Assembly: GCA_003427395.1 (NCBI GenBank)
Contig: BFEA01000004.1
Coordinates: 697,874-761,873 of the forward strand
Reading direction: 5' to 3'
DNA length: 64,000 bases
Source of the DNA: Chara braunii
Taxonomy: Eukaryota; Plantae; Charophyceae
Of this stretch, positions 5,395 through 62,582 are shown in pieces. Every line of letters starts with the position of its first letter. The first letter of the stretch is position 1. A program made the position numbers and the translations under genes. Under the pieces are notes generated by a model. That model did no database searches. It was not told the DNA's origin and worked only from the letters and a program-made list of their open reading frames with translations.

Positions 5395-5826
5395 GTATAT
5401 ATATAACATATGACTGCACCGGTAATTTCTGCCCCACAAGACATAGACTGTAGCTTTACTGTTGCGATCGTACAAGTAGCAATGAGGGACCGCCAACTTG
5501 AACTACACAATGCTCAAGCAGGTGAGTCGTTTCATCCACCATCTCACATTTTTGCCTGCATTGTACACGGATCTGGCACTTACATGTCCATTGCACATGC
5601 CTCTGTCTACTGGGAGTTGCGGAACAACGACACCAGGGTCCATACCATGACTGATGTTGCCAATTTCTTACAGAACGATGCTGTTTTCTTGCCAGACTGA
5701 ACCGTTTGCACACTCTTTTATCTCGAAGATCATTTCTCGGCCCCTGTACCGCAAAAGGATAATGTATCAACACTCCGCGACCTTCCCCTTTGCACAGCTT
5801 TAGCTTACAGATAGGTGACTATATGT

Positions 5827-5938
5827 ATTGTTATAGAGAGCTGCTCGGTGAACCGTAGGCAGAGAGGGAGAAGAGGACTACAAAGGAGGGGATGTGACAG
5901 ACTTCTCCGTCAGAGTTCCACTGACTCATCAGGAGGCT
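5827..5938 (-). mobile_element. Hammerhead-repeat copy, 5'-truncated and diverged
   Basis: Reverse complement reads AGCCTCCTGATGAGTCAGTGGAACTCTGACGGAG...CTGCCTACGGTTCACCGAGCAG; the GAAA core is mutated; TA-rich flanks. Confidence 0.75.
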
Positions 5939-6553
5939 AGTATACAAGCTACTGATGGAGCCCCTGCGATGGGGGTGGAACAGTCCTCTGGGTGTAGCTG
6001 TTCATGCAAACGTCTTTGCACTACTGTATGCACATGTGTCTGCGGATCCAGTTGTTCACTCAACAAGAATGTAGAACATTTTTCTCTGTCCGTGTAAAAA
6101 AACACAAATAAGAGTTAACAAGTGATATGTTTGTACCCGTGAAAAACCGTTGTGTTCACCCTCCTGACGAGTGACTGGTGGTGAAAGTCCAATGAAAGTC
6201 TAGCATGATCATGGTTTTTGCTGGCTTTATTGAACGGTAACACACACAATGAAAAATAGCAGTGTTAATAGCACTGAGACTAATGTTTTGCCCCAAATAC
6301 AGGTATGATGACCGTGGGTTCAATTAGTTGGAAGACAGTAGTCATAACAGTTGGTATCTATGCCCATGCTTAGATCCGATGCAATTCTTTACCCCCTGAA
6401 CCCCCCGCCAATTGTCCATGAGCAGTTGGGCCGAACAGAGGGCACAGAAATATCGGGTGCCTGGTTTGGTGCAAAGGCAGATACCAGCAGCACCACAACT
6501 CTGGTCAGTATCAGGGCAAAACACACGCACACACACACACACACACACGCGCG

Positions 6554-6608
<55 letters not shown>

Positions 6609-7448
6609 NNNNNNNNNNNNNNNNNNNNNNNNNNNNNNNNNNNNNNNNNNNNNNNNNNNNNNNNNNNNNNNNNNNNNNNNNNNNNNNNNNNNNNNNNNNN
6701 NNNNNNNNNNNNNNNNNNNNNNNNNNNNNNNNNNNNNNNNNNNNNNNNNNNNNNNNNNNNNNNNNNNNNNNNNNNNNNNNNNNNNNNNNNNNNNNNNNNN
6801 NNNNNNNNNNNNNNNNNNNNNNNNNNNNNNNNNNNNNNNNNNNNNNNNNNNNNNNNNNNNNNNNNNNNNNNNNNNNNNNNNNNNNNNNNNNNNNNNNNNN
6901 NNNNNNNNNNNNNNNNNNNNNNNNNNNNNNNNNNNNNNNNNNNNNNNNNNNNNNNNNNNNNNNNNNNNNNNNNNNNNNNNNNNNNNNNNNNNNNNNNNNN
7001 NNNNNNNNNNNNNNNNNNNNNNNNNNNNNNNNNNNNNNNNNNNNNNNNNNNNNNNNNNNNNNNNNNNNNNNNNNNNNNNNNNNNNNNNNNNNNNNNNNNN
7101 NNNNNNNNNNNNNNNNNNNNNNNNNNNNNNNNNNNNNNNNNNNNNNNNNNNNNNNNNNNNNNNNNNNNNNNNNNNNNNNNNNNNNNNNNNNNNNNNNNNN
7201 NNNNNNNNNNNNNNNNNNNNNNNNNNNNNNNNNNNNNNNNNNNNNNNNNNNNNNNNNNNNNNNNNNNNNNNNNNNNNNNNNNNNNNNNNNNNNNNNNNNN
7301 NNNNNNNNNNNNNNNNNNNNNNNNNNNNNNNNNNNNNNNNNNNNNNNNNNNNNNNNNNNNNNNNNNNNNNNNNNNNNNNNNNNNNNNNNNNNNNNNNNNN
7401 NNNNNNNNNNNNNNNNNNNNNNNNNNNNNNNNNNNNNNNNNNNNNNNN

Positions 7449-7624
7449 GTTTACCGGGCAGTTCTATTTGACGATATATATATATATATATTTTCAGCCT
7501 CCTGATGAGTCGGTGAAACTCCAACGAAACAGTTTGTCACAGCCCCTCGTTTGTTGTCCTCTTCTCTCTCTCTGCCCACGGTTTACCGGGCAGTTCTATT
7601 TGTGACGATATATATCGTCAAATA

Positions 7625-7627
<3 letters not shown>
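7449..7627 (+). mobile_element. Hammerhead-repeat cluster: 3' fragment, (TA)n, 5'-truncated copy (7493-7608), inverted 3' tip
   Basis: TTCAGCCTCCTGATGAGTCGGTGAAACTCCAACGAAACAGTTTG...GGTTTACCGGGCAGTTCTATTTGTGACGATATA; lacks the 5' arms of stems I and III; flanked by (TA)n. Confidence 0.8.
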
Positions 7628-7677
<50 letters not shown>

Positions 7678-13418: not shown

Positions 13419-15343
13419 AAAGCAAAGACGCCCCTTACGCGTGGCGTTGCGCCTCGAACGCAATGTGCATTCTGCTCGAGATCTAAAATCACTTTCTCAG
13501 CACTCTGCACAATCCAGCAACAACATTCACCACCTTCATAATGACACTCATTATCCTTTCTGCGGAGAGACCTGATCACACCATGTAGAGCACTGAGCTA
13601 AGTACTCGAGAGGCCACTGTTAATCCTTGCAAGAGGCTTATGTGGGGGGCGGGGGAAGAGGAGGATTATGGACATCTGACACTGAAGGTCAGTGGAGATC
13701 GGGAAAGGTTGTTTCGTTGAGTGACTCCAAGATGCACCAAAGAGCAGGTGGACATAGTGCGCTTTGGGTACAAAGTAGAGAGAAATGAAGGTTGGCAGTG
13801 TGCTGATAGCCCCATCGACGCGGGCCATCCTTGATTGAAAAGTGTCTGGGGAATCTGGGGATTGACAATGCTGGTGCTGATGCATGATTGACAATGCTGA
13901 TGCTGGATGCTGTGCAAGGTTTATTCGGGCGATAATTGTACGTGTGCAATGCATTGGCAGGAGATATTACCATGATGTGCAAGGTTTTCATCGGCTGGTA
14001 CTACGACAAATTGCTGTGTTGGCACCTCACGAGGCAGCCTGAGAAGGTCCCTGGTACATTTGACCTAGAGAAATTCTGTTAGGATCTTAACAGAATTGCT
14101 GCAAAACATCTACTACACAGCTGCAACAGACTGTCAGCAATTACAGGCTCGATTGCACGCTGATGCAATGGCTGGCATAAACATGGAAATACGATCATCC
14201 AAGGCACGTTTCAGTGCTTTCAGCACATCCACATCCACGACGTCAACATTGACGCAGTACTTTCGAGTCTTCGAAGCGAAGGAGAGCCCACAAACGAGGG
14301 TCTTGTAAAATGATTTGGTCCACTGTGGCCACATGACCATCAACAATGTCAGCACACCATGCAAATAATTATCCACAGGATAAAAGTCCGGAGGAGGCAC
14401 ACTGCTCGTTATTTGGAGTGCCACTTTTTGTGGCCATGGCGGAATATTTGTTCACTTGCCGAATTGGACGCGCAATTGGCTGGTGCTGTCTTTTACCACA
14501 CACACTTATTTCTCTAACAGCCGGCTGTGGATGTAATTCAACAACCTTCGGCAATCGTAGGACGCCCCATACTTCTGTAGTGCGAGCAACCCAACCCATG
14601 TGAACATGCTTAATGAAATTTCAAATTTCAAATTTCAAATTTAAGAACACCTTGTGCTTAAGAACACCTTGTACTTGTGGAGCAAGCAACCTGATCCATA
14701 TTCACAAACACATGAAATTTGAGACCGGAGCCTGTACTTGTCATATGCAGGACCGGAATTCGGCTGCCAGTGGTGAGAATATTGCAAACCACAGATCATG
14801 CGCTCCAATTGACACATGTTTGGTGTAAGCTCAACATCAGCAGCCATTGCAATAAGCAAAGAGCGCCAGGCAAGCATGACTTGGGAGAGTGAGAGATGGA
14901 TTGCCATTCTGAATTAGCTGCTAGGATCAGCATGCGGTGTAGGGCGGAACGCACAACATAAAATGGACAAGAGCGCCAGGCAAGCATGACTTTGGGGCGA
15001 ACAGTGGAGGGCGGCCTTAGGCATCGCAAACATATCCACCCGCTGCCGGACGAAAACCCTTCACGAGGAGCGGCCTCATGTGTGAACCGTTGCGGATTGA
15101 TGCAGCCATCAGCATTAGATAGAGATGGTGGTGTATACATTCCGGGAGCTGCAATCGTATAGAAAAGCAGTAAACATGTGCATGTGCATTCTGAGAATGA
15201 TTTTTTCCCTGGTTGCTGGTTCTTACCCTGGCCCTATGTGACACCCGCGGCCTAGGCCGCAGGCAATTCGGCCCCTGCGGCCGAAGAGGTCGGCCACAGC
15301 CGCAGCAGCCGCCAGGCCCTACTGCGGCCCAATTTTTTTTACA

Positions 15344-15503
15344 GTGTAATCAGTGAGGGGATTCTGCAGACTGTTGAGGGTTCAGCCTCCTGATGAGTCG
15401 GTGAAGCTCCGACGAAACAGTTTGTCACAGCCCCTCGTTTGTTGTCCTCTTCTCTCTCTCTGCCTACGGTTTACCGGGCAGTTCTGTTTGTGACGAATAG
15501 GAC
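15344..15503 (+). mobile_element. Hammerhead-containing short repeat (retrozyme-like), longest copy
   Basis: Hammerhead followed by a CT-rich tract and a 3' hairpin CTGCC..CGGTTTACCG..GGCAG, ending in (TA)n; homologous to the copies at 2.2, 5.9, 7.5 and 19.7 kb; 5' boundary approximate. Confidence 0.75.
15366..15425 (+). ncRNA. Type III hammerhead ribozyme (structurally complete)
   Basis: Stem III GCAGACTGT/ACAGTTTGT; GTT cleavage triplet (15373-15375); stem I GAGG/CCTC with loop GTTCAG; core CTGATGA (15390-15396); stem II GTCGG/CCGAC with loop TGAAGCT; core GAAA (15414-15417). Confidence 0.88.
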
Positions 15504-15894
15504 ATATATATATGGGGTTGTAGGGTTTTAAAAGCCCTACAGCCCCTTTTTTTTTTTTGAATTTGACTTCATTCAAGTTCATTTACAATTTGTAAAAAAT
15601 GAAAAACGAAAATCGGTTACAAAATAAATAAAAATAAAAAATAAAAGAAAAGCAGGAATATTACATACATATACATATTTTTTCTTTCACGAGTCCTTAA
15701 AATTTTGCCAAAGTACTTGCTTTTCTTCTTCTTCTTCTTCTTCTTCTGTGCTGTTTGATTGATTGATTGATTGATTATTGATTGATTAGAAAGAAAAAAA
15801 AAATTGAACACGCTAGTTCGTGTGTGTGTGTGTGTGTGGGCACGCACTTGTTTGTGCACGCTTCTGTGTATGTGTGTGTCTCTCTGTGTGTGCA

Positions 15895-15928
<34 letters not shown>

Positions 15929-15942
15929 GTGTGGTGTGGTGT

Positions 15943-15977
<35 letters not shown>

Positions 15978-18392
15978 CTGTGCGCGCGCGCATGTGTTTG
16001 TGCGCACACGTGTGTGCGTGTGTGTGTTTCCCCGTGTGTGTCCCCCGCATGACGGGTGGAGGGGAGGGAGGACCCCTCCCCCACCAATCAATCAATCAAA
16101 AAAACAATCAATTAATCGATGTTTTTTTATTTTAATTTTTTCTATTTTTTTGTCACACAACCTCCCCCCCCCCCAAATTTCCCTTTTTTTTTTATAGTGG
16201 CTTCCGGAGGGGGACGCCATGCGCAGGCAATGCGCGCGCCCCATTTTCAGGCGTGCGGCTCCGCCTGTGCATGGCGCGTAGCTGCCGGCCTCCTCAGCCG
16301 CAGGATCCACGGCCGTGGGGGTCACATAGCCCTGGCCATATACCCTCCCCCCCCCCCCCTCTCTCTCTCCCCGCATGGTTGGGTCTGTGGTAGGATTTGG
16401 GGAGGGATTTAGGGAGGCACAGTGGCAGACACCAGTTCTAACAAATAATGAAGACATCCAAACAGAGGGCAAAAGGAAACCAAAAACCAGTCGAATAGGT
16501 GAACCCGTGCCTGGTAGCAGTGCGGCGGGAAGAAGACGTTAGAACAAACAATAGACGCAAAACCCCCAAGGAATTGCTAAAAGACTTTCAAGGTCGACCT
16601 GAGAACAACTCCAGCAGACTTTCAACCACGGGCCACCTCTAAATAAACAAAAGATGCACCACCAAAACATACAAAGCAGATAACACCAAAGATGTCATTT
16701 CCACGTAGACTCCACACTGCTAACCTAACCTCCGTCTAATCTCGGACCTCTGATCGAAGCTCCAACTCCACTATCACTGCCAAAAATCGGATAAAAACGA
16801 AAAACCAAAAATCGGATAAAAACGAAAAACCAAAAATCGGATAAAAACGAAAAAGATTAACTAGCAAAACCGGTCAAAAGAAGAAGAGAGCAACAATCAG
16901 AACACAGAGAGCACCTACACCTCCTCACAAGTGATATCCCTCCGTCCGAGCTGACATCACATTCGGAGCCCCGCAGAATGCTTCAGAAACTAAAACACAA
17001 CAACAATACACCATAAGTTGGAGACACTTGTTGCACTTCCTTATAGATAGACACAAGACTCCTTCCTGATTATGATTCAGAAGGACATATCTTTCACAAG
17101 GTAGCAGCCATCGAGCAACCAAGAGTCTAGTTCGCATGACCACAGGACATGCCCATTTTGTCGACAACAGACTTGCGATCCATAAATCCCAGGCAGGAGT
17201 GCCCCACAGCCTCTGTTTTAAAAAGCACCAGCACACGACACATCGGCCCGCGGGTGTCAGCAGGAAACCTGGCACCACTTTTGAGGCCGCCGATTTTTTT
17301 TTTTTAACAGCGCCCCACGCCGCGCAGTCCCTCCGAGTTTTGCTAGTGGCGACAAAAAACTTTCTGCAAGGCTGCCGCGGCCGTGTACTTCCGGTTTAAC
17401 ACTCGGCATGCCCGTGCAAAGGAGGATTCCCGCCAAAATTATTTCTATATGATAGGGGTATGGCCAATCCGAAGAGAGGGCAAGATCCACCATCGGCCCA
17501 CCAACAGCTGGCATAGGGACCGTGTACTTGCAGTTTAACTCATTCAAGTCTGACAGCAGGCAGGCATCAGTCAAAGATAAATCACAGCACCATAACACAC
17601 CAGTCTCGCATCCTATACCAGCAACAATGCACTCGATGCTTTTCTCATTCCGCACCCTGTACATGTACCTTGCAGATCAGGTGAGTGAGACCTGTTCCTT
17701 CTCCTTTCCCCTCACGTTCACGTCCTTTCATGAACAGTCGTACGCCCTAAACCGCAAGATACAATGTTGTTTGTGAAGATCCCCTAATAATCCGCAAGGA
17801 CTATCTACAAGGTGTGAAGGAGGAAAACTGGTGGGCACATCATTGGACTAGAATGTGTGGCTGGTATGTGCTGCTGACCCATGCTGCTAAGACATCAACA
17901 GAGGGGATCACATCGATCTGGAGAAGTACCTACAAGCAGACACACACAGCGGCACCACAGACCGAGGATAAAGCCGTCGAACGAACAACCCCCCCTATCA
18001 AAATGACTACGAACCTCCCCTCCGCATCCTCTGGCTAGAAGAAGAGGTGAGGGCAAGGCTAGAAGAAGAGGTGAGGGCAAGTGCAGCACACACGCAACAA
18101 CAGCCACCCGACAGCAATGCTCTCTCGCAGTTGGTTGATGGCTCTATTGTTATCAGCCCGTCCAACATGAGACATGTTGCGTTCATGCAAATTGGCTCTT
18201 TTAAATTCCCATAAGTTGGGCTTATTCAAACCTTGCTCCTGGAAAAGCAATGCGTAAAAAAAAAGAAAAAAAAACACTGAAAGCAGCGACAGCACATTTC
18301 GCATCTCCAAAAGATGCCCTCAAAAGTCCCAAAAACGCAAACCTAAGAAAAGAATACCAATCAAGCAACAACATGTACGACCCATCCCTCGC

Positions 18393-18536
18393 TCAGCACG
18401 AGCAACCCCCGGCCTTGTTTTCCGCCTGTGGTGGGTTAACCGTTGGCGTCAGTTTCACATCTACAAGGTCCTCCGTCTTCGTCGCCGACACGGCTTCCAT
18501 TCCTGGCAAGGCTGCTGCAATCTTCCGAAACAATGC
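18393..18536 (-). CDS. RAB6: Rab6/RabH1 exon 6 (terminal)
   Basis: ggcag| acceptor; ALFRKIAAALPGMEAVSATKTEDLVDVKLTPTVNPPQAENKAGGCSC* with a CxC prenylation motif; the six exons total 648 nt = 215 aa + stop. Confidence 0.95.
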   Translation of the reverse strand, partial: ALFRKIAAALPGMEAVSATKTEDLVDVKLTPTVNPPQAENKAGGCSC

Positions 18537-19014
18537 CTGCCAGGGAAAATATGAACAAAAACAAAAACAATAAATCCAATGTCTGCCAGGCCTGCAGGCC
18601 CAGGTGTACTGGTGGGTTTCATGCCCCACACCGATGCTGATGACAAACCATTCACGCCACTATGCATCCAACATCTGCAGACAGATAGATGATTGATGCA
18701 AATGCCAGAATAGGAAGCCTTTTTGGCCACATACTGCTCGATGAAAAAAGAAAACAATGACCTTTTTGGCCACATACTGCTCGATGAAAACACAAGAAAA
18801 AATGATAGTCCATGCGCAGAAGTAGATCATCAATAGACAACGAAAAATAAACTGGTGTTTTCACTTGCATGAACACCTGGTCATTATCCCTGTATCTCAT
18901 CATGAAGTTGCCCCCACGTAGAGCTATAATGACCAGGCGGGCGTCCTATTCGTCGGAGACAACAACAGCCCTCTGTCTCATCTACTGTAGCTAGATGGAT
19001 TGATGCATCAGAAC

Positions 19015-20419
19015 CTATGTGACACCTGCAGCCTAGGCCGCAGGCAAACCGGATGCTGCGGCCGGAAAAGTCGATCGCGGCTGCGCCCAACAAGGCCTAC
19101 CTTGCGGCCCGGTTTTTCGGGTGTTTTTTTTGGGTCAAAAAATAAGTAATATATTGTCACACTGTGAATCAGAGCGCAGAAGCGAAAAAAAGAAGAAGAA
19201 AATAAGAGAAAAGAAAAAAGGGGGAGAAGAAGAGGTAAGGAAAGCTCCACCTGTTCATAACCTCTTACGTACAAGGCCAGCCACGTGGATGACAGGTTGA
19301 GCGCTGGCTGCCCCCATCCCCGTGTGTCATAAAGACCCACTTGCACGCAGCCAAAAGGCAAAAAGGTAAAGAAAAGGCGGAGGAAACCAAACCTCACAGA
19401 AGAAGAAAGCCTATTAAACAGACGAAGCAAGTACACATCCCACAGATAATCCAATTACCATCCCACAGAACATATTTTCTTTTTTCTTTTTTCTTTTTTC
19501 TTTTTTCTCAGGTTTCTTTTTTTGTGTTTTTCTTTCCTCGGTTTCTTTTTTTAACTTTTTACTCGGTTTTCTTTTTTTAACTGTTTCTTCTACACTTCAT
19601 CTGTCACCCCCTCGGCAGATAGGACAACTACGGTGAGGATGACGGGGATGTTCACAGGGATACCCAAGGAGAGTTGCGTTAGTGCAGCTATATAGCCTCC
19701 TGATGAGTCGGTGAAACTCCGACGCAACACTTCCCCTCGTTTGTTGTCCTCTTCTCCCTCTCTGCCTACGGTTTAACGGGCAGCTCTGTTTGACGATATA
19801 TATACGGGTTGCAGGGTTTGCAAAACCCTATAGCCCATTTTTTTGTTTCTGAATTTGACTTCATTTGCGATTTTTAAAAAATGAAAAACGAAAATCGGTT
19901 AAAAAGAACAAAATAAAAATAAATAAAAGAAAAGCAGGATTTTTTTTTTCACATTTTTTTCATGACTGATAGTCCTAAAAAGGAAAGCAGGTAATTTTTT
20001 CTCTTCTTCTTCTTCTTCTTCTTCTTTGCTGTTTTTTTTTCCTTCTTCTTTGCTGTTTCTTCTTCTTCTTCTTCTTCTTCTTCCTCTTCCTCTTTGCTGT
20101 TTTTTTCGTTTTCTTATTCTTCTTCTTCTTCCTTGCTATTTTTGTTCTCCATCTTCTTCTTCTTCTTCTCCAATTTCTTCTTCTTTTTGGTCTTCTTTTT
20201 CTTCTTTGTTTCTTCATCTTCTTCTTCCATTTGTTCTTCTTGTTGTTCTTTGCTGTTTCATTTTTTTTGTGGTTCTTCTTCTTCTTCTTGTTCTTTTTTC
20301 CACGACCTCCTTCAGGCAATTCAGCAGCGGTGGTCAGACACAGATAGAGAGAGAGAGAGGGCTGCCACACGGCCGCTCGCCAGCAATCGGCTGCCAAGGG
20401 GCAGCCCGACAGTGGTCCA

Positions 20420-20463
<44 letters not shown>

Positions 20464-20855
20464 GCCACGTGGCAGCTCGTTAGAAATCGAGCTGCCAAGT
20501 GGCAGCCCGGCAGTAGAGAGAGAGAGAGACCTGCCTCACAGAATTGTTTTTTTTTTTTTGCCAAATGGGGGGTGCGCAACACCGTCAACATGTACCAACC
20601 CCTCACCATTTCAAATTCACTATTTGGGGGGGGGTCGTCTTTTTTTTTAAACCCCTATGAAATTTCTTTTTTCCCCAAAAACTTCCATTTTTGGGATGGG
20701 AGCCAGGGGCCGACGTGCGCAGGCGGCGCGTGACTCCACCTGGCCGTGGCTCGGCCACACAAAAAATCGTTCGCGCGGCCTAGGCCACAGGGTTGCGGCC
20801 AGCCTCCTCGGCCACAGCCGAGGCCGCGGGATCCGAGTCTGAGGGTCCCACGTAG
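19015..20855 (+). mobile_element. Second member of the CTATGTG-TIR family, in Rab6 intron 5
   Basis: Starts CTATGTGACACCTGCAGCCTAGGCCGCAGG and ends GGGTCCCACGTAG; TSD ATCAGAAC/ATCACAAC (7 of 8 match); shares the hairpin and AT-rich block with the 15.2-kb copy. Confidence 0.78.
19694..19797 (+). mobile_element. Hammerhead-repeat copy, 5'-truncated, core mutated
   Basis: AGCCTCCTGATGAGTCGGTGAAACTCCGACGCAAC...CTGCCTACGGTTTAACGGGCAG...TGACGATATATA, between TA tracts. Confidence 0.78.
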
Positions 20856-20875
20856 ATCACAACCACGTGGACTTA

Positions 20876-21021
20876 CGAGTACGGTCATACTTCGGGTAAT
20901 GCACTCGATCCCATCCGAACTTGGAAGCCAAGTGCCGTTGGGCCGGAATAGTACTACTGGGATGGGTGACCTCCTGGGAAGTCCCGGTGCTGTACCTTAA
21001 CAACAACAGAAGAAAAAAAAA
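20876..21021 (+). pseudogene. 5S rRNA-derived retrocopy with A-rich tail (Rab6 intron 5, antisense)
   Basis: GTACGGTCATAC...GATCCCATCCGAACT..GAAGCCAAG...AGTACTACTGGGATGGGTGACCTCCTGGGAAGTCCCGGTGCTGTACCTT followed by AACAACAACAGAAGAAAAAAAAA; isolated copy with a 3-nt duplication in the internal control region. Confidence 0.85.
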
Positions 21022-24995: not shown

Positions 24996-26053
24996 CTAGA
25001 GGTTTACCCAAACTTTCACGTGCATCGCTCTTCAGCTTGGTTACAAATTTGAAAATGATCAGCGAACCCATCCCCATGTGTCATATCGTCCCACTTGCAC
25101 ACAGCCAAAAGGCGAAGAGGCAAAGAAAAGATGAAGGGAAGAGCCAAATATAACAAACAGGGGGCAACAAGATCCTGGATGACAAGCCCCACATGTAAGC
25201 ACCGCCCCCAACTTCATAGGCCAAACGACGGAAGAAGACCAACCAGGATATCAAAACACTCTTGCCTGCAAAAAAGAAATCCCAAATACATATCTATATA
25301 CAGCAGATGGCCTTGTTCATCATCAAGATGTTGGTATTCCTTTTCGTAACCATTCATGCTCTCATATAGGCCGAACAACGAAAAAACCCAGATGACTATA
25401 TATTATTTTTTAATTTCTTTTAATCCTATTCTTTATCGCAATGTCTGCCCTTATATAGGTGGGTTCAGCAACTGATTTGTTCCCATTTTAACTACAGAGC
25501 CGTTTTTTTTTGTTCTTTTTTCTGCTTTCCATCACATGCCTGTTCGAATGCACGATCAGGAATACAATAAAGGTGGGCATGTTGATCATAGCAGACCTGC
25601 AGACAGAGCCCTATGTTGACCACGTGCTGTCCGTGACACAAAGCCTGCACAAGCTCTCTCCTATTGCAAATGGAGCTGCTGCTCATTTCGAACAACGAAC
25701 ACATACTGTGGGGAAAACTCCACACATCATCACATTAAAAACTGCTGGACCAGAGCATGCAATGCAACCACCTCTACCACAAGTCTCCTGCAAGGATCTA
25801 CAAGAAGAGTTGCCACGACCTTTTACAAAACACAGAGAAACACCACCCATCTGCACACTGGACAGGTCAGCATCATTTCAGAAGCTAAGCTAAATAGTAT
25901 GCCGAATCTGCGGAGATCACATTCAAGGCTGCAAGCTGCCGATCGCAGCGTTACGCCAAAGCCCATCCATTCATAACAGGAAAGCATTGCCAAAATTATC
26001 GATTCATTACAGGGGCCTTCCTGTATCCCAATTCAGCGCAACACAACAAATCA

Positions 26054-31249: not shown

Positions 31250-33500
31250 AGCGGACGAGAAGAAGGCAAGGCGAGCATCAGGATCAACAGTGACTGCTCA
31301 AGGAGGAGCGGGGGGGGGGGAGGAGGGAGGGGGCACGAGACTTTTCAAACGCATATGAGAGAGACAGGAAACGTCGGAACAAAAACAACAACCTTCGAAG
31401 AGATGACGGCCGAAAAAAGGAGTTTGACCAGATAATAAAGAGGCCGAAAAAAGGAGTTTGACCAAATAGAAAAAGAAGACTGAGTTGAGGCCAGTGGAGA
31501 CGAAGACAGGAGAGCGGAGGGAAGAGTAAGGGACACGTCACGGGGAAGCGAAGAGCGGACGGTGAAGCTCATGGAAGCCAAATGTTTCTGTTTTTCAGAA
31601 ATCGTAGGTGTTGTCCTTGGCTCTTCGAGGAGAAACAAAGCGGAATTCGAATGGAAGCCAGGAGGGGAGAAGAGCAAGAGCGTTCCTGAAGTGGGAAATG
31701 AAGAGAGGAATTCACCGGAGTGAAGATCGGTTAAGTACATAGTGGCGTGCGAGAGACGTGCAAGGCATGCATCGGACGGTTGGGGATAATCAAAAAGGGA
31801 TAACAAAGGAGGAAGGGACCAAAATGTACTGAAGTTTGTGTAAGGCGCGCAATCGATGATTGGGCATAATCGAAGGGATAACAAGGGATAACTAACGACG
31901 AAGAGAATTAACAGGAGAACAAATCTGCAAGCGTAAGACGCGTTCGGGGGGGGGGGGGGTATAATCGTGAAAGGGGGAGCCTGAGGAAAAAATAAAAACA
32001 GGCGTCGCCTAAAAGGGGGACACTCGGTTGCCAGAGCTTCTAAAGGAACCAAGTAACACGGGGAAATGGGAGAGAGAGTTTTGTGTGGAGTGAAAAAGGG
32101 GCAAGGAAGCATGAAGTGCAGGAGGAACGACGATGCGCGCAGGGCGCACGAGGAGAGGTCACAAGGAGAAGATCAGTGAAGTGAAGTGAACTGAAGTGAT
32201 CATTCTAGGATGGAGTGAGGTGATGAGTGAAGGAAGGTGATGATGGATTCAGTAAAGGGAGACAGAACAAGGGAGTGGAAGAGAAAAATTCGAAAAATAT
32301 AATTGCACTTCCCTGATAAGTGTCCGGCAGAGTACAAGGGAGAATGTACAAAAAATGTAGGAGGGAAAAAACGTAAGAGACGTGAGGAGGGAAGGAATGA
32401 GAGAGAAAATGAACGTAGGAGGGAATCACATCACATGAGGGGTTAGCAGCCAGAAAAGCACGGAGCAAGGAGGAGGAGTGAGCAAAACGAAAGTAGGAAG
32501 CAGGGTCGACAGAGCAGAGAAAAAAGAAGAGCGCGGACGTGAAAGTGAAAGCGTGACGTGTGATGGGGGCAAGTAAAGGGGAAACGTATTACTAATAGAG
32601 TAAACGAGAAAACGAGAAGGCAAAGCGGAGTGTCGAGGGTAGTAGAAAGGTGAGCACAGTCAAAAGTGGAGGAGAGCGGATGGCTTGTGAAGCAAGCAGC
32701 GCGAAAGCAAGGGGGGAGCTCGAAGAGTTAAGAGTGGGCGGTTGAGGTAGAAGGCTGGGGATAACAACATACCATTCGAAGAAGAGTAGTATAGCACCTA
32801 CGACAGCGCCTACTGTAGGACAGCAGAGAAACGGGCGTGAAGGCAGAAGAAGCGTAGAGTAGAGTAGAGTAGAGAGACAAAGGAGATGGACGAAAAGTCG
32901 GAAGGAGGGTGCGGAAGGTGGAGAGGGTTAAAGAAGCGTGAAGGGGAAGTAGAGGAGAAAGAAAAAAAAGGTGAACGGAGAATTGAGGGGGGATGTAGAG
33001 GGTTAAAAAAGGGTAAGGTAAACGGAAATAAACAAAAACTAGGGGGAGGGGTGAAAAAACAGATGATCGTCCTTCGGGACATCCGTTAAAATTGTAACGA
33101 CACAGAGAAGATTAGCATGGCCCCTGCGCAAGGATGACACGCATAAATCGAGAAATGGTCCAAATTAAAAAAAAAGAAAACAGATGATCGAAGGCGAGAA
33201 AGAGGGAGAGAACGGGGAGAGTGGGCGGGAAGTGGGGAGAGCGGCGGGGAAAGTGAGGAGAGCGATGAAGAGAGTAAAGAGGAGAGTGAAGGGGACAATG
33301 GCGAGAGCGAGGGAAGACAAAGTGGGCTATATAACGGAGTGCGTCAAAGGAACGAAGCAGAGTAGAAAAAAAAGTAACAAGCAGAGTGTGTAGGAAACAG
33401 CCTACGAGTAGTCGGAATGAAAATAGGAAGAGGGGGGCAAGGACTGTAGCCAGGAGAGCTCAAGGCAACGGAGCCAAGGCGTAGGGGAGAGCAGTAGAGC
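31250..33500 (-). mobile_element. Highly decayed LINE ORF2 relic (hosts the U6 retrocopy)
   Basis: Strong purine bias on the plus strand and a remnant VLAPLF-like RT motif near 33.4 kb on the minus strand; boundaries approximate. Confidence 0.4.
33069..33176 (+). pseudogene. U6 snRNA processed pseudogene
   Basis: Full U6 body with ACAGAGA box and ISL (ATTAGCATGGCCCCTGCGCAAGGATGACACGC); poly(A) in place of the U-tail; TSD AAAACAGATGATC at 33056-33068 and 33177-33189. Confidence 0.92.
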
Positions 33501-39048: not shown

Positions 39049-41934
39049 TTTAAGCATCTATGTTGGGGAGTAGAGGACGTGCTGATAAGAGCAGACACTC
39101 CCTCTACTCCCCTAGATGGATAGATGGCTCCGTTCCATTAGTGGGGAGCTGCACCTGCTGGAAACCGGGTCCAGCGTCCCTTTACATCATCCATAGTGAA
39201 CATATACCAAAATTTAAGCTGAAAAGTGGGCCCAACGACCCTTCATATCTGGGAATGCTGGGGAATAGTTATGCCTCTTCACCCTATTCAGGCGCCAGAT
39301 ATGCCATTACATCTAGCAATATTAACACTCCCCATCTGCTTATCGTGAGCTGGGACTGGGATCCACAGATAAAACCCAGACTGGGACACAGGTAATCACT
39401 CAAACGCATACCATGAGCCAGGAACTAAGGCCAACTTTGGTGGAGGAAAAGGATCAGGAAACTCAGAAAGGGGGCTGAGGGGAATGGAGGGATCTATGTT
39501 ACTCTAGTCATTAAAATATAAGTGGTAATTCATTGGGAGCTCACCGTGAGCTATCTCGCACGCTCCATTCCATTCAACCTGCCCAATTTTACCACCTTGT
39601 TCCCCTCCAAGCCAGTTTAGATTGAACGTTTTTATGTGTTGTTTGATTTCTTTTTCTGCTGTCAAGGTTTTAAGTTTTTTTTTTAATGTTTCTCATCTCG
39701 AGTTAATATCTAGTTGGATTTGTTGTTTGATGGAATCTGTGAACTCAGGCCCATCTAGACGGGCATCTTCCATTTCAAATGTGCACCTGTGAAACCATAT
39801 GGCATAGAAAAAAGTTATTCTCCCGATCGTGAATAGGTTCGTTGTTAAGCTGTCTTCACATGATGGGGTCCAGGCTTCCAGGAGGAGAGCTTTCTAGTTC
39901 CATGGCCATGGTAGGGAGGTTTCAATCTGGTTCCAGATCCTATCCCACCAACGCCATAACCAAACTGTCCCCTGAGCACTGTAAAAATATATGTTCTATT
40001 GTTTCCGGAATCAATTTGGACGGGAAGGCAGATTTGCAGAACTTGCACTAGGGAAGGGTTATTCCTCTTTGTTCTAGAGTAGTTTTGTCAATGATCCAGT
40101 CATTGGTTGACAAGCATCGGTGAGTGATCTGCCATTGAAGGGATGCCATTTTAGTTGGTTTGGATTTGATGGAATGGAACCATTTGACTGAATGTAATTT
40201 TTTTTTGCTCACGTTTAGGTGTCTCATCCATCGCTCTTCTATTCTATCTTTTAAATTTATCTTCGGGCGCAGCATCCTGTATGTGGATTTTACTGACAAC
40301 GTATGAAGAGCCCGTGTATGGGAACGTCCTGGATATACCTTAGACGCCTAAGACCAACTAACAGGATCTAGTGGGAGATGGGATATAGGAGTATCTGGTT
40401 TATAAGTCATCCACCTATCTTTGATCATTAATATCCTAGTCCTGAATAGTCTGTCTTTTTGGATTAGCCCCATGCTTTGATGTGCAGTGGATCTAAGGAA
40501 CTCATCCTCCTTCAATTCATAAATTGTCATTAACACATCACGATTAGGGCGTAGCTCACTAATTTTTCCTACCACACCTGGCTGATTATGGATGGAGACC
40601 CAATCATTAGGAATAAGGGTAGGCCATTTTCTCAAGATCCTAACCCAATCTAAGGGGATTATATCAATTATCTGTTCCAATGCTTCCTTCTGATGGCGTC
40701 AGTATCTTAATTTATCATTAAGGGTCGGGAGGTCAATCCAGTCTTGGTCCTCCACACTCCCAATATCTCTGATGCGCGTAACTCCTCTTCTAATTCATCC
40801 TTTCCAAGAAGAGTCCGTGCAGTTTAAGGTGCATTCATGATAGTCTCTGATGAGCGCATTGTTGAATAATGTTTGTTGGCATACTTCTTCCCATCTTTCT
40901 GGTGCTACTTTACCTGGGATGGGTAGTTTCCTCCACGTTTTGAGCAGGTCAGTCCATAAGGGGTCCCTGAATAGGTCAGTCCTTGCTGCTTGGCGATCAG
41001 ATAAATCCAAATTTTGGGGTTCTGATGGGGACGCCCTTAAAATCGGCCAGGCGCGATTTTCCAACCATATTAGAGGTTCAACCTCATCTGGGGTGAGAGG
41101 GGCGAGGCGTCTGATCTGTTCGCAAGCCAGATTATTCCATGGGGCTTGGGGATTGAATAGTAGGCATTTTATCCATTGAATTGAAAGTGTCTTCGCTTGG
41201 GTGGTGGGGTCAATTATACCTAGACCGCCTTTGGATTTAGGTTGAATTAATGATTTTCATGCCACTCTGCTGATAACATTTTTGGATTGATGATTACCTC
41301 GCCAAAGATATGCTACCAACTGCGTCTGCAAGATTTTAATGGATAAGTTATCAAGGGCCCAGATAGCGGATTTGTACCAAATAGAGGCGAGGACCACATT
41401 GTTAATCGCTAGCGTTCTTCCTATCAATGAGGTGTGTTTATCTTTCCATAATTCGAGTTTTGAGAGTGCATGTTTCAAAATCCCTTCGTTATTGGATGTT
41501 GGTTTGCCAAGGGCTGATAGTGAAATCCCGAGAACCATGACTAGCGAATCAAGCGGGAACCATTTGATCGTTGGTCGCTCTGGAGGCCTTACTCCTTGAT
41601 AGTGCATCCACCAACCAAGGGTTTTGTTTCCCCAGTTAATCCTCATGTCTGATAGTTTACAAAATACGTTCATAATCCGTTGTATCGCCTCTAGGTTTTC
41701 ATGTGAGGCATCAACCATGAGAGATAGGTCATCAACGAAGCGAGAACATATCGGAATGGCGTCCTCTGGTATGAATGTAACTTGGATGCGCTTGATATCT
41801 TTATGGTGGCGAATGTGAGCTGCCAGTGCTTCCATGATGATTACAAAGAGAAGCGGGGCAATGGAATCTCCTTGCCTAATTGATCTTTGTAGCATTATAG
41901 GAGGAGCTACATTCCCATTGACCATGACTCTTGT
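39018..41934 (-). mobile_element. 5'-truncated, decayed L1/Tx1-type LINE
   Basis: RT motifs RSIRQGDSIAPLLF and RFVDDL, SLIGRTLAINNV, and a C-terminal zinc-binding-like region; poly(A) tail (T-run 39018-39047); TSD AGACAGGC at 39010-39017 and 41935-41942; several stops and frameshifts. Confidence 0.9.
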
Positions 41935-54759: not shown

Positions 54760-55856
54760 CATAGAGAGAAAATCATACAAAAATTGATATAACTTAAGAA
54801 GAAGAAGACGTGAGTTTTACTATCATGGCGACATTAACTTCTCCCCTACATGCCTCGACATCACACCACCGAGGATCTCAACCCTTCCACTCATTTGCCA
54901 CTCAGGCTGAGGAATGAAACCATCTACCCCCTATAAATATAAGTTTACGGACATACTCTCACCCGTACGCGGGCATTCCCGGTCGACATGTTACTCATCA
55001 ACCCGGTGTTCTAGTCCCTATGCATTGGCCCGTCTGAAACCTGGTCACAAGCTGCCCTGACCTTCATTTTTCGCGCGAAAAGGCGCTCGGGTGGACGCTC
55101 TGCCAGCCTCCTCGAAGAACCAAGTCTGTTGAGCGGTACCTGGCCACTATTAACGCTAAATACGTTCCTGCGAAAAACTCGCTAAAAACGCTCGGGCGAC
55201 AACTCTGCCATCCTCCCCGACGAACCAAGTCTTCTGACAGGTACCTGGCTAACATTACCTGCAAAAAACATTCCTGTGGAAAACAACCTGGTACTCCACG
55301 AAAAAACTCGATAGGGCCGAGTCCTTGAGTTTTACCCGACGATCCAGACCCCCTTGCAGAAGAGCCAATGAGAGTCCAGACAAAACCAGAAAAATCCAGA
55401 ACATGCAGAACAATGAAGAAAAATAGACAAAAGTAGAAAAATGGAGGTCACACCAAAAACACTAGACGCACCGGCGCGCCTCAGTCCGATGGTGGAGCAC
55501 GCAACTCAAGCCAAAAACGCCCAGTTGGTATCCATAAAGTCTCCCGCGTATCACGTACCCGGCTCTGTTGGATAACCCACGATTACCTGTCAGCAAGCTA
55601 TGTTTCAATCGCACAGGACATATCTTTCCAGATCCTGCTGCCATCTCGCCGATACATCCAGTCCAACCCTGCCAGCACGACTTTATCAGGGTAGTTTGCC
55701 TTTCGGAGCTCCTCGTTAAGGCTGAGGATATTGAGAAACGTGATCCCCACTTGGTTGGAGTTATTGGAGATTCTGAGAATGGTATTGGCAACAGTCGCAA
55801 ACTTCGCCAGGCGAGGCCCAAATGGGGCGAAATCTTCGTACGTTCAGAATTTCAGG
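54760..55856 (-). repeat. PLE 3' pseudo-LTR
   Basis: Direct repeat of 60963-62057 with scattered substitutions. Confidence 0.92.
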
Positions 55857-57736
55857 GGGCCAGCATCCCAGATCGAGTTTCCGTTCTTAAACTTATGAAA
55901 CATCACCAGGGCTGCTTCGTTAATAACCAACATACGAGTCTCAAGAAAATCAAGGATCCCTGTACCCGTGTCCGTGCGTTCAAGCTGCAGTCCATCGGGA
56001 TAGCAGCTGGTGACACGATCCAGTCGATCCTTGGCAAGCTGACGGCTCACTTGGTCACCTTTCTTGAAGAAGGCAATTATTAACAGGTCGTCAATATATG
56101 GTTTCCCCGAAATCAGGCGAGCATCACTTCCAAGCTCAGATAAAAAGATGAACTCAGCGCACATACACATCACGCAAGCAAAGGGAGGGCTTGCCCTCCC
56201 ACCCATAGGAATCCCATGCTTCTGTCGGAGGATCAGTCCAGAGACTATAAAGAATGTATTGTCCAGTTGGAAGTTGGTTAAACTTACCAACTTGCTCAGT
56301 CGGATTGACTTCCACCCAGCTTCCCCGTGAGACTTGCCAAATGTGGCTAGTTTCTTCCGGGGGTTAATTCGAATCCATTTAATCCCTCCCTGCTGAAACA
56401 GTTCCACCATCCACCTAACAGCACGGATAATTTCCGTGTGGGGGAGTTGAGTAAACATTTCTTTGATGTCGTATGTGCGTGCTTCGAGCCCATAGCCCCT
56501 TGGTACCAATTGGTTAATCCTGGACACCTCAGGTTTCAGGTCGCTGATAGCCCGAAGGTTAAAGTTTGGTGCCTTCGTCCGCTTAATCAGCGCGTTCAAA
56601 GCCGTGGAAAGTAAACCGGAGGCAGTCCGGTAGGGCCTAAAGAAAGACGGAACCATGGGTCTTTTCTTTTCCTTGTCCTTCTCCTTCGACAGAACGTACG
56701 CATGTTGTACATCACCTTTGGGATCCCACTTACTGATCTCATCCAAGTGGTTCTTGCCATATCTCTTCCTCATCTCGGTGAGGACCATTTCTTTCGACGA
56801 CTGAATGGTCTCGTAATTTTCATTCTCAGTGTACATCTTCCGAAGCCCCATCTCATACAACTTGGGGCATTCAATCCAAGTCTCTGATGTGTTGCGGTCG
56901 AGGGGGGACAAGACCAAACCCGACAGAGACTGCCCAATACCTTTAACGTACTCACTCAAAACACAACCATCAGGCTTTGGTACCCCGACCTTGCAAACGG
57001 ATAACAAATTCACCTGAATCTCCCCTTGTACCACGCCAGTCCGTCGAAGCTCTGAGATGGCAGTATTACAAGCCATATTCAGAGCATCCTTGCTAGTAAA
57101 TATTACAGGGAAGGAAACATTTTTTAAGTTAAACAGGAAAGGGTCAATGCCATCCAATTCGCTTAGTTTGACTGCAACACGCCCATTTAACTTAGGCAGT
57201 TCAAAGCCAGCGCATACACAGTCAAAAACATATGCTTGCGCAAATGGCTTCTGGTTATGCAACAGGTCTCCGACATTATGGCCTTTCATCCATACTGCTC
57301 TCGTCCTCCTAGCATACAAGTCAGCAAGCGAAATTGGAACAACATGTGACAGAATCCAGTCCCTCACAGCAACAACAACTCGGTTTTTGTCTACAGTAGT
57401 ACAGAAGGGAATTTTAACAGTAATACTCAATCTTGGGTTAATGTCAAACTTCCGTTTGAAGACATTTGTAAGGATACCCCGAATGATCTGACGGCCACGC
57501 TGCTGGTTAATGGTCTTAACCCCATTATTAAAGTCAATTAATTCTTCTAAAGAGCAGGCATACAAATCTCTCCTTTTCCAGGGCGCACGCAGGAGGGCAA
57601 TAAGGTGCGCTTTCATCAGATCAGACTTAGTTTGAGTTCTAAGTAATTGGGTGATGAACCAACAACCACCTGACTCAATTGAAGTCTTAGCATAACAACT
57701 TTTTTTCACCATCACACTCGATCTTAGAAAAGCCAA
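55583..57736 (-). pseudogene. PLE reverse transcriptase region (linker, RT, thumb) with two premature stops
   Basis: TYDIKEMFTQLPH, QKHGIPMGGRASPPFA, YIDDLL, FLET; the frame continues past TGA (55844) and TAG (55598), which read CGA and TGG in the other repeat copy, to TAA at 55583. Confidence 0.88.
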
Positions 57737-57913
57737 ACAGCAAAGTCACCAGTGGCCATGCTTTCAACCAGCGATACCCCGACTTATTGCTAATACTCAC
57801 AGGATTGCGGCTTCTCCGCTTATTCAGCAGTTTGAGAATCCTCAGTAGGTCTGGTTCCTGGCAGATCTTAAGATCAGGACAGTCAAAATAAGCATCCCCC
57901 CTCTAAACACCTT

Positions 57914-58354
57914 TTATCTCCGGCAGAAAACTCGATAGGGACGAGTTCTCAGTAGGTCTGGTTGAAAAAACAGAGGTTCAGATATGGCAGCCAAGGGCGG
58001 CCGACAACCTGAACGCTTCTTCCCCCGACCCTTCCGAGAAGACTTAGCAAGCCTGCGACCCATTGAGTTCAAGCCTGGGTTGTGACCCTGAATAATCTTA
58101 GGTTCAATACCCTCAACAGCGAGGGCGGCACCAAACCAGATGGGAATTGAAACATAGTGTTTGATACCAACCTTACGCAACCAAGAGTGTACCGGCTGTT
58201 TGCTACTGGTTTTTACAGCCCTGCAGTGCTCGGACCACCTCTCCCTCAGTGGGCGGATAGTCTTCCCAACGTACACCAACTTAAAGTCTATTGACATGAG
58301 TGCATACACGCAACATCGGCCATCAAGCAGGCTGCCCCACTCTCCATCAGTCAT
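57914..58354 (-). pseudogene. GIY-YIG endonuclease domain of the PLE
   Basis: VYALMSIDFKLVYVGKTIRPLRERWSEH...E...LN; disconnected from the RT frame by lesions. Confidence 0.85.
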
Positions 58355-58528
58355 GCGCAGCCAGAAGGGTAAGTAAGCCCGTCCCTATGCAATGTCCCCC
58401 CTTAGGCAAGCCAAAAGAACAATCAAGACCTTGATCTTATCCATCAACACCTGCAGCGAACTATCAACAGAACATTGCAAGGCACTAATGCGCCTTGATG
58501 CTCTTTTTAAGGAGCGAAAGCTTCCTAA

Positions 58529-60218
58529 TCAGTTACCGGCAATTGAGTCACCACCCTTCTCGTTCCCAGACTCTGGGTTATCACAGTTCCTCGCAGTTGT
58601 CTTGCGAGAGGGCTCAGCGCCCCTGTTCCCAACGTTCACCCCATTTGGGGCATTACCATTTAGTTGGTCCGCGTATTCTTGCAGATCCAACCTCGCTAAT
58701 TCCCAAGCTGCTGGTTCCTTACGAAAGTAAGAAATTTCTCTCTGCTTGCATAGTTCCTGCACCCTGGTATAATGCAAGGACATGTAGAAGTCCTGCCGCA
58801 TTTTCATATACACGGCCAACCCGCCTTCATCAACCTCTTCTTCCTCATGGTCAGGGGTGTTCACGGCAACATCCACATCTTCATTGTCCTCTTCCTCCAT
58901 TCCATGCTCCTTGACAGGCTGTTCCTCAGGATCCACCGCCGGCTGCTTGCCTTTGACGTCGGCGAGACTTTGTGCGATCGCGACCGAGACTTTGTGCAAT
59001 CGAGGCCAGCATCTTCTTCACCTCGGATAAGTCACTGCTCTTCTCCAGTTTTTCACTCAAGTTTTGTCGCACCTGACCGATATCACTGTCTTCCTCGTTA
59101 GAAGAGATTTCAACTCGGCGCGATCTCCCTTTCGAACTTCCTCTCGATTGGGACTTCGTGTTGTTGGCAGGCGTCACAGCAGCGGGCGCTACAGCAGCCA
59201 CTCGCTTTCGCTTCTCGCTACTCGCTTCCTTCTTGACCTTCTTGAGGGCAGCCTTCTCCGCTCTTAGTCGCATTAGCTCCTCCTTCTCGATGGCCACCAG
59301 CTTGGATTCGGAGTCCACTTCCTCAAGCTTCTGGGTGATTAACTTCAGTGAATCTCCGAAGGTCGAAGTAACCCATGCCTTCATATCGTCGGTCTTACAG
59401 TTCGAGCGGACTTCTGACCTGCAGCTCTCGTTTGTGCTGTCCGAAATCCGCACGCCACCCATCCTGCCTCCAGAAATCTTCCTCTTCGCAACGTTGAGAA
59501 CTTTTTTCGACTTTATATCCTCCAAGATGTCCATGTATTCTTTTGTAAAATATGCCCGGTTACCTGGGTCTGGAAAAGCATTCGCAGTCGGACCTTTCCC
59601 ATGGTTCTGATTAGACAATCAACCATCGCCATTTGTTTGAGCTTTGGAATCGAGAAGATCACCATTCTGCGAGCTTGGTACTTGGACGCTAGGTAATTGC
59701 ACATTAGATGGTTGAGGAAGAGGCAGAGGAAGAGGATTCCCAGCAGGGGGCATTTGCCATGGAATGACAGCAGGCCATTGTGCAGTAGTCGGCCACGCCT
59801 GCATAGCCCATGGTGCAACAATCGGTGGCATAGCATACTGCGGGTGAGTTCCGCTATTCACCGGGACGAACGGTGCTGCATTCGTCGGAGGTACCTGTTG
59901 CTGCACCGGCGGTAGCTGCTGCTGCGCACCTTGCGCTTGTACAGTGGGCACAACATACGTTGGCACAATGCCCGGAGGCGCAGGCGCAGGATTATACTGC
60001 CCGGTACCAACTTGATTTGGCAGCTGATGTCCGCCATTCATGTTCGTCCAGTACCGACCACAGCTCGACCAGCGGCCACGCCTAGCTCCTCGGCTCCCGC
60101 TACGACTCAGCATGGAGAAAGCAAACATTATCCACCCAAGGCCCAGGCTAATCTTGTTCTTCACTTCGTTGAACTTTGTATCAGTCTGTAGCTCGGAGGT
60201 CCGGAAGCGCAAGAACAT
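58529..60218 (-). pseudogene. N-terminal region of the PLE (P/Q-rich, coiled-coil-like, SAP-like), broken into three ORFs
   Basis: Consecutive minus-strand ORFs 59619-60218, 58926-59618 and 58529-58999; YMSLHYTRVQELCKQREISYFRKEPAAWELA resembles a SAP helix-turn-helix. Confidence 0.6.
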
Positions 60219-62057: not shown

Positions 62058-62582
62058 CTGGGGAGCTAGTCTACACAAGTTTCCACACATGATACTGTCT
62101 ACACAGATTCACAAAATATATACACAAAACAACAGGTTGGGGAGCTAGTCACTGGTGGGGTCTAGTGCCTGCAATAGGTTCAGGTAGGTTGGATAGGGTG
62201 CCATTGGGTGCAGTTCCTACTGACATTCGGATAGAACTGTTTGGTGGCTATATATATATGGGGCCTGTAGTTCATTGTCTGGGCCTGGCGTCCGAAGTTC
62301 CCATTCGACAAGGTTCGTCCGATTCAACTTCCACCAGGGCTGGCCAATCTATCAACCCTGGTGCCTGTCACTGCTGTTCGGTCCAAGTTGCCTGTCCGTT
62401 GGTAGGGCAATGGTCCTGAGTGCTGGTCACACTGAGGTAGAATAGTGGGATAGGGGGTGCGCTAGGAGTATTGACGTGAGGATGGGTTGGGAGGTGGTCT
62501 CATATTCCAGGATACCCACGGCTCACAGTTCCAGGTGATCACTGTGCACACACTGACTGGCCTCTACAACACCCGGGACTTA

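Follow-up and report, generated by a model that had tools for sequence, protein, structure and literature searches.

Penelope-like elements target microsatellites, are commonly 5'-truncated and leave adjacent inverted fragments, and hammerhead ribozymes occur in some of the Chlamys elements of Chara (Craig et al. 2021, PMC8557442). Hammerheads are also carried by the LTR retrozymes of plants (Cervera et al. 2016, PMC4918200) and by the non-LTR retrozymes of animals (Cervera and de la Pena 2020, PMC7229834; Li et al. 2026, preprint, 10.64898/2026.07.22.740005). Here we consider a 64,000-nt stretch of the Chara braunii genome (the window; contig BFEA01000004.1, positions 697,874 to 761,873), for which a preliminary description had noted hammerhead sequence at the same internal site of three DNA transposons. 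The arrangement is confirmed, and on balance we favour reading it as recurrent landing of a retroposon in a (TA)n tract of the transposon, i.e. as ordinary nesting of mobile elements.

Results

The window contains a family of elements with terminal inverted repeats (TIRs). Two are complete (E1 and E2), and an assembly gap interrupts the third (E3); an nhmmer search with profiles of the arms, the ends and the palindrome region described below detected no further copies in the window. E1 is a non-autonomous element of 1096 bp on the forward strand (15234-16329); its arms are GC-rich and bear GCGGCC-type repeats, and its core is AT-rich and rich in microsatellites. Its 19-nt TIRs are 89% complementary, a second, subterminal inverted pair lies at 15274-15294 and 16284-16304, and the element is bounded by an 8-bp target-site duplication (TSD), CCCTGGCC, whose copies at 15226-15233 and 16330-16337 match perfectly (8/8). 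E2, also on the forward strand (19015-20855, 1841 bp), follows 2.7 kb further on in the same orientation and begins with the same 12 nt as E1; its flanks, ATCAGAAC (19007-19014) and ATCACAAC (20856-20863), match at 7 of 8 positions. The two elements are 78% identical in the left arm and 90.8% in the palindrome region, and their right arms are alignable. E3 occupies about 1762-2373 on the reverse strand, its far end falling in the N gap at 768-1761. Its terminus at 2373 reads CTATGAAACACC, with two mismatches; nhmmer places it in the family by its left arm (E 4e-16) and palindrome region (E 1e-35), and it has in common with E1 the order (GATT)n followed by (GT)n. Its subterminal repeats are of GCGGAC rather than GCGGCC type. 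E3 is a diverged subfamily and the three elements are unequally close, E1 and E2 being the closest host pair. The common termini of the preliminary description stand for E1, for E2 and for the one available end of E3, and its 8-bp TSD for E1 and, with a single mismatch, for E2. We considered whether the additional 530 bp of E2 might be an older cassette, and rejected this as the similarity was not significant; a 53-nt inverted match between this extra segment and the region downstream of the palindrome pairs low-complexity T-rich with A-rich sequence, and we did not rely on it.

The usual hAT terminus begins with YARNG, and hAT-type MITEs combine 8-bp TSDs, short TIRs and subterminal repeats. 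The family described here is probably hAT-like because its target duplications are 8 bp long, and it further resembles hAT-type MITEs in its 19-nt TIR, its GC-rich, repeated subterminal motifs and its lack of coding capacity; it differs from them in its terminus, CTATGTGAC, which starts with CTATG, not YARNG. None of the ORFs in E1 had a family match, a scan of ten large ORFs of the window detected no transposase domain, and no transposase turned up whose ends match. Spurious ORFs in the right arm and at the junction of cassette and palindrome were also translated and used in protein searches, which gave no matches.

In every one of the three elements, hammerhead-retroposon sequence (the cassette) is followed by (TA)n and then by a palindrome with a 12-bp stem. 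The palindrome pattern, GGGTTGYAGGG-N9-CCCTAYARCCC, is exclusive to E1, E2 and E3 within the window (0 occurrences expected by chance), lying each time directly after (TA)4-11 and the retroposon 3' end; a scan of metagenomes returned one match only, L001, which is unrelated. The insert in E1 extends at least over 15366-15503 on the forward strand, with 15342-15365 adjoining it upstream, and is 96.4% identical to a copy outside the transposons (7498-7607). It is succeeded by (TA)5 (15504-15513), the palindrome (15514-15546) and a T-run (15547-15558). E2 carries a forward-strand copy (19695-19796) that has an 8-nt deletion and is 5'-truncated inside helix I, with TATATA upstream at 19689-19694 and (TA)4 plus palindrome downstream (19797-19837, the TA repeat being 19797-19804). 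In E3 there is a 44-nt 3' tip on the reverse strand (2188-2231), bordered by (TA)n at 2166-2187 and at 2232-2251, and the palindrome lies at 2134-2164. The differing 5' extents reported earlier (complete, truncated and tip) are thus borne out. TA repeats are absent from the 5' side of the E1 cassette. With each insert taken out, the TA tract beside the palindrome is continuous. Every cassette is oriented alike with respect to its host (chance 0.25 if random).

The sole complete hammerhead of the window is a type III ribozyme in E1 (15368-15423, forward strand). It scores 43.8 bits against Rfam RF00008 (E 2.6e-7 for a search of 5.7 kb and 2.9e-6 for one of the whole window), which is under the gathering score of 48.5, and no hammerhead in the window passed the gathering search; the cmscan alignment spans model positions 1-54. 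The minimum-free-energy fold is the canonical three-way junction, with nine pairs in helix III, 4 bp in helix I and 5 bp in helix II; helix III uses 15366-15374, the U at the cleavage site is also paired in this fold, and the predicted cut falls between 15375 and 15376. The core CUGAUGA...GAAA is present in E1 (15390-15417) and in the copy near 7.5 kb (7502-7530), broken in E2, where GCAA replaces GAAA, and in a copy near 5.9 kb, and missing from E3. The full arrangement of three helices around the core, in which helices I and II end in loops and helix III is open, is confined to E1; E2 reaches just 18.2 bits. A ribozyme-core scan of viral and prokaryote genomes gave no matches.

Two further copies of the retroposon are free of the transposon, with neither palindrome nor TIRs at 7449-7607 or 5820-5944, in keeping with what had been stated of them. 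The first belongs to a forward-strand cluster in a (TA)n tract (7449-7674) made up of a partial 3' end (7449-7473), a truncated copy (7493-7607), a 12-nt inverted 3'-end fragment (7616-7627) and (TA)24, with TA repeats flanking the copy at 7474-7491 and 7608-7674. The second is a decayed copy on the reverse strand (5820-5944) with the same truncation point as E2. Five 5' ends were counted for the five copies in the window, and every copy has its 3' end on TA repeats, decayed in the case of the 5.9-kb copy. Variable truncation, a microsatellite target and the partial tandem plus inverted fragment at 7449-7627 are traits of a Penelope-dependent retroposon. The window also has Penelope-like ORFs, and a protein search with one of them (55844-57736, reverse strand) gave four Chara homologues, named RT or GIY-YIG.

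Discussion

Cassettes at the same site in three transposons are most likely explained by a retroposon that lands in (TA)n and a transposon that has such a tract. Chara braunii harbors a short retroposon that is non-coding and bears a type III hammerhead close to its 3' end. We hypothesize that it is copied, probably by a Penelope-like reverse transcriptase, and integrates into (TA)n by target-primed reverse transcription, usually as a 5'-truncated copy. A family of non-autonomous TIR elements, with an internal (TA)n abutting a conserved 12-bp-stem palindrome and T-run, would then have offered one further target among the (TA)n tracts. Transposition would have come first and the retroposon second, with at least two and probably three independent hits on the tract, whose outcomes may be read as a long copy with the whole ribozyme (E1), one that breaks off within the ribozyme (E2) and a tip of 44 nt (E3). 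The preliminary description had left undecided between repeated, site-preferring insertion and one capture followed by erosion. The former is the better fit: TA repeats directly abut the 5' ends of the truncated cassettes in E2 and E3, as they do at the free 7.5-kb copy, the sequences upstream of the cassettes show no significant likeness, and the cassette tree is incongruent with one capture. It had also concluded that in both cases the ribozyme would be spread by a cut-and-paste vehicle, which does not follow, as insertion could postdate transposition, and a retroposon entering already-transposed copies means that the transposon carried nothing. The trace that transposon transport would leave is two transposon copies that differ in TSD but agree in their cassette junctions, and there is no such pair among the copies in the window.

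The upstream sequences of E1 and E2 are no more similar than shuffles (p 0.61 and 0.08), and the three cassette 5' junctions have no significant sequence in common. Homology between the 25-40 nt upstream of the E1 ribozyme and the sequence upstream of E2 or of the 5.9-kb copy was rejected; words in common can be picked out by eye (ACAGTGTAATCAG, TGCAG and GACTGTT), none of them beyond what shuffles give. In the maximum-likelihood tree the E1 cassette groups with the free 7.5-kb copy (support 92/98), and two linked characters divide the copies, TCTCT with GTGACGA in E1 and the free 7.5-kb copy, TCCCT with GACGA or GACAA in E2, E3 and the free 5.9-kb copy. A capture in the ancestor of all three elements, after which the cassette formed part of the family consensus, was spread by cut-and-paste and eroded from its 5' end, would account for the same site, the same orientation and the occupancy of all three host copies, no cassette-free copy having been seen in the window. 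It appears very improbable nonetheless: an AU test rejects a single clade of the three transposon-borne cassettes (p 0.003), erosion must have deleted 5' sequence only while substituting TA repeats in two copies, and the E3 tip is 95% identical to the E1 cassette while their hosts are just 80-85% identical. A mixed history, in which a cassette inserted a single time into the progenitor of E1 and E2 was carried by the transposon to both sites, E3 being struck separately, is unlikely but deserves more weight. E1 and E2 are the closest hosts, their proximity and like orientation would fit local hopping, the AU test disfavours an E1+E2 cassette clade without formally rejecting it (p 0.07), and a single site (TCTG versus TCTA) unites them. 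Moreover, although their cassettes are more alike (94.0%) than their left arms (78%, p 0.001) or the hosts overall (85%, p 0.03), they do not differ from the 90.8% of the adjacent AT-rich host segment (p 0.46). CpG decay could account for the greater divergence of the arms, an argument that we dropped because the numbers were too small. Set against a mixed history are the unlike 5' junctions of E1 and E2, the joining of the E2 copy to TATATA, as expected of truncation at insertion, the closer match of the E1 cassette to the free copy than to that of E2, and the different 3'-end variants of E1 and E2, both of which occur outside the transposon. Recurrent landing in turn has to accommodate the common orientation, the want of an empty copy, the missing 5' TA repeats of E1, the TCTG site and the comparison at p 0.46, and the tree is small (111 columns, five sequences).

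It may also be asked whether the palindrome makes the adjacent TA a better target than an ordinary, equally long (TA)n, for instance if the GIY-YIG nuclease recognised a DNA structure there. Inside the transposon 3/3 (TA)n loci in the window are occupied, outside it 1/3, and the two empty loci (5396-5405 and 62249-62259) are comparable in length to the TA tracts left in E1 and E2. The difference is not significant, however (Fisher p 0.4), and the free copies need no palindrome, so that we regard such an enhancement as improbable; by the same figures, a cassette frequency no higher than at random TA tracts of similar length, which the preliminary description had named as evidence against its proposal, is not rejected in the window. 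Equally doubtful, in our view, is that E1 is a live source gene and the TIR element a launch pad that relocates and multiplies retroposon masters by cut-and-paste. E1 could be such a source because it has the sole intact hammerhead, retains the upstream strand of helix III and closely matches the free copy, and the palindrome and T-run after (TA)n might end the transcript. If this were true, DNA transposon and ribozyme retroposon would propagate each other.

If recurrent landing is the right reading, a retroposon that targets microsatellites repeatedly lands in one carried by a multi-copy transposon. Such landing can mimic cargo capture, which calls for caution in the annotation of Chara repeats and in claims of ribozyme cargo in DNA transposons. 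The palindrome-adjacent TA tracts of the TIR family would constitute related (paralogous) sites across the genome, and could serve to gauge how often the retroposon inserts and how its truncations are distributed. E1 also supplies one structurally complete hammerhead for cleavage assays.

Among described systems, the cassette may be compared with Chlamys-clade Penelope-like elements including Chlamys-2_cBra, which has a 3' hammerhead; microsatellite bias, 5' truncation, partial tandem or inverted copies and hammerheads are common to both (PMC8557442). Set against Chlamys-2_cBra by description, the Chara cassette differs in being non-coding and about 140-180 nt long, and the Penelope-like copy in the window has no such hammerhead, nor is there cassette-like sequence on the 3' side of its ORF (55844-57736). 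Plant LTR retrozymes, too, are non-autonomous retroelements from the green lineage that carry a type III hammerhead, but the Chara copies target a microsatellite and lack the 4-bp TSD of those elements (PMC4918200); around the cassette copies there is no LTR or direct repeat pair, second ribozyme, PBS or PPT, each copy having one hammerhead. Finally, the non-LTR retrozymes of animals are, like the cassette, short hammerhead repeats, thought to derive from the ends of Penelope-like elements and to depend on their machinery (PMC7229834; 10.64898/2026.07.22.740005); theirs, however, are type I ribozymes in tandem arrays, whereas that of Chara is type III and found in dispersed, truncated single copies.

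The TIR elements and their shared palindrome

The window contains three microsatellite-rich elements with CTATG..CACC termini, here E1, E2 and E3, the two complete ones (E1 and E2) 1.1-1.8 kb long. The left end of E1 (15234-16329) reads CTATGTGACACC, and its right end reads CTATGTGACCCC in reverse complement; over 19 nt the two termini show 89% complementarity, 15274-15294 and 16284-16304 form another inverted pair, and the identical 8-mer CCCTGGCC occurs on either side of the element, at 15226 and 16330. E2 (19015-20855) shares its first 12 nt with E1, is 78% identical to it along the left arm and alignable along the right, and is bordered by the 8-mers ATCAGAAC and ATCACAAC, which match at 7 of 8 positions. 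E3, on the minus strand, ends at 2373; its far end lies inside an N gap (768-1761), and its target-site duplication (TSD) is lost with it. This gap and another at 6609-7448, which takes the upstream part of a cluster of free cassette copies at 7.5 kb, both lie between microsatellites.

The preliminary description treated the three as copies of one transposon. That E3 belongs to the family is supported by nhmmer profiles (arm, E 4e-16; palindrome region, E 1e-35), by a common terminal ~17 nt and by (GATT)n followed by (GT)n, an order that it shares with E1; its subterminal repeats, however, are of the GCGGAC rather than the GCGGCC type, and it is a diverged subfamily member rather than an equal copy. 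No further family copies were detected in the window with these profiles. The TSD of 8 bp, the short TIRs and the GC-rich motifs repeated next to them suggest that the host may be a hAT-like, non-autonomous element; its terminus does not match the usual hAT start, and the ten large ORFs scanned in the window yielded no transposase.

All three elements contain a palindrome with a 12-bp stem, GGGTTGYAGGG-N9-CCCTAYARCCC, which occurs nowhere else in the window (chance expectation 0), preceded in each case by the same retroposon 3' end and then (TA)4-11. The co-location of cassette, TA tract and palindrome noted previously is thus confirmed in three of three elements, and is real and non-random. 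E2 alone also has ~530 bp (19158-19688) between left arm and cassette, absent from E1 and E3, of which 64 bp (19313-19376) recur at 25067-25130 with 87.5% identity; this segment was considered as cassette-related and rejected, being unrelated to the cassette.

The retroposon and its hammerhead

The cassette is a short non-coding repeat present in five or six copies or fragments. Three lie inside TIR elements, at 15366-15503 (E1), 19695-19796 (E2) and 2188-2231 (E3, minus strand). The others are free: a partial 3' end (7449-7473) and a truncated copy (7493-7607) in the (TA)n tract at 7.5 kb, where 12 nt of the 3' end also recur in inverted orientation (7616-7627), and a decayed copy at 5.9 kb (5820-5944, minus strand). 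TA repeats stand at the 3' end of every copy, decayed at the 5.9-kb copy, while the 5' ends differ or are truncated in all of them.

Only E1 retains a whole ribozyme. The Rfam model of the type III hammerhead aligns over its full length at 15368-15423 with 43.8 bits (E 2.6e-7), narrowly below the curated threshold of 48.5, and the fold of minimum free energy takes the form of the canonical three-way junction, with a predicted helix III of 9 pairs using 15366-15374 and predicted cleavage after U15375. Since the 15366-15374 strand is paired to the ribozyme, it counts as retroposon rather than host sequence, which makes the E1 cassette the least truncated copy and not a unit of another kind. A further ~24 nt (15342-15365), between the end of the E1 left-arm homology and the start of helix III, could be assigned to neither element and are probably a further upstream part of the retroposon. 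In E1, loops 1 (GUUCAG) and 2 (UGAAGCU), within 15380-15408, contain the complementary tetranucleotides UUCA and UGAA, which could form a loop-loop contact, as used by natural hammerheads. The E2 copy begins inside helix I, has GCAA instead of GAAA and lacks 8 nt, and the E3 copy is without any ribozyme.

One capture or several insertions

Two scenarios had been proposed for the shared position, repeated insertion into the TA tract and a single capture followed by erosion. The 44-nt tip in E3 has (TA)10-11 on either side, the truncated E2 copy has TATATA before it and (TA)4 after it, and the same signature is seen at the free 7.5-kb copy. A truncation joined directly to TA would remain after insertion of a shortened cDNA into a TA tract, and capture with later erosion is disfavoured because a full copy worn down afterwards would not acquire TA repeats at that point. 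Removing the insert restores an unbroken TA tract adjoining the palindrome in each case, and local alignment of E1 and E2 upstream of the cassettes finds nothing beyond chance (p 0.61 and 0.08 against shuffles). In a maximum-likelihood tree the E1 cassette joins the free 7.5-kb copy (support 92/98); forcing the three transposon-borne cassettes into one group lowers the log-likelihood by 12.3 units (AU p 0.003), and grouping E1 with E2 alone lowers it by 6.6 units (p 0.07). Two linked characters split the copies into two variants: E1 and the free copy at 7.5 kb have TCTCT with GTGACGA, and the other three (E2, E3 and the free copy at 5.9 kb) have TCCCT with GACGA or GACAA, so that each variant has both free and transposon-borne members.

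The E1 and E2 cassettes are also more similar (94%) than their left arms (78%, p 0.001) or the host sequence overall (85%, p 0.03). Against several insertions, however, E1 and E2 are 90.8% identical in the AT-rich host segment beside the cassette, no different from the cassette itself (p 0.46), so that CpG decay may account for the faster change in the arms. All three cassettes share one orientation, one site places E1 with E2, the 5' side of E1 is without TA, no cassette-free host copy was seen among the three in the window, and the tree has no more than 111 columns. On balance, repeated insertion fits better than a single capture: an insertion into E3 independent of those in E1 and E2 is fairly secure, and the E1 and E2 insertions were, less securely, probably independent of each other as well.

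The simplest account of the co-location is nesting, in which a TA-seeking retroposon would repeatedly enter a TA tract present in every copy of the transposon. Spread of the ribozyme by the cut-and-paste element, as first suggested, is not established by the three copies; as a minority reading, a copy carried by the transposon, E1 for example, might act as a source gene. Counting independent (TA)n tracts of 8 bp or longer, the window has six, and the cassette occupies 3/3 inside TIR elements and 1/3 outside (7.5 kb occupied; 5396-5405 and 62249-62259 empty), a sample far too small to decide the matter (Fisher p 0.4; 0.43 with the decayed 5.9-kb site counted); there is therefore no sign in the window that the transposon is hit more than any TA tract.

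Other elements and comparison with Penelope-like elements

The window, which is eukaryotic, also holds a tRNA-Ser, a U6 snRNA copy and a 5S rRNA-like gene. The U6 copy (33069-33169, 96.6 bits) has an A-run at its end and lies between two occurrences of the direct repeat AAAACAGATGATCG (33056-33069 and 33177-33190), features that mark LINE-type retro-copies and not native genes. The 5S rRNA-like gene (20877-20998, 84 bits) starts 22 bp past the right end of E2 and is followed by an A-rich stretch, not a T-run, and may therefore be a retro-copy too. An ORF with a reverse-transcriptase domain (RVT_1, E 2.9e-8; 41257-41925, minus strand) is probably a fragment of another retroelement.

A Penelope-like element occupies 54760-62057, and its ORF (55844-57736, minus strand) shares 45-60% identity with four Chara braunii proteins named RT-domain or GIY-YIG, all homologues found being annotated proteins of this species; no hammerhead or cassette-like sequence was seen 3' of this ORF. 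Penelope-like elements are described as targeting microsatellites, being truncated at the 5' end and leaving short tandem or inverted fragments, and hammerheads have been reported in some Chara Chlamys families (Craig et al. 2021, PMC8557442). As judged from TA flanks and truncation pattern, the features examined in the window, the cassettes described here show this same set: a microsatellite target, 5' truncation, and small tandem and inverted pieces.
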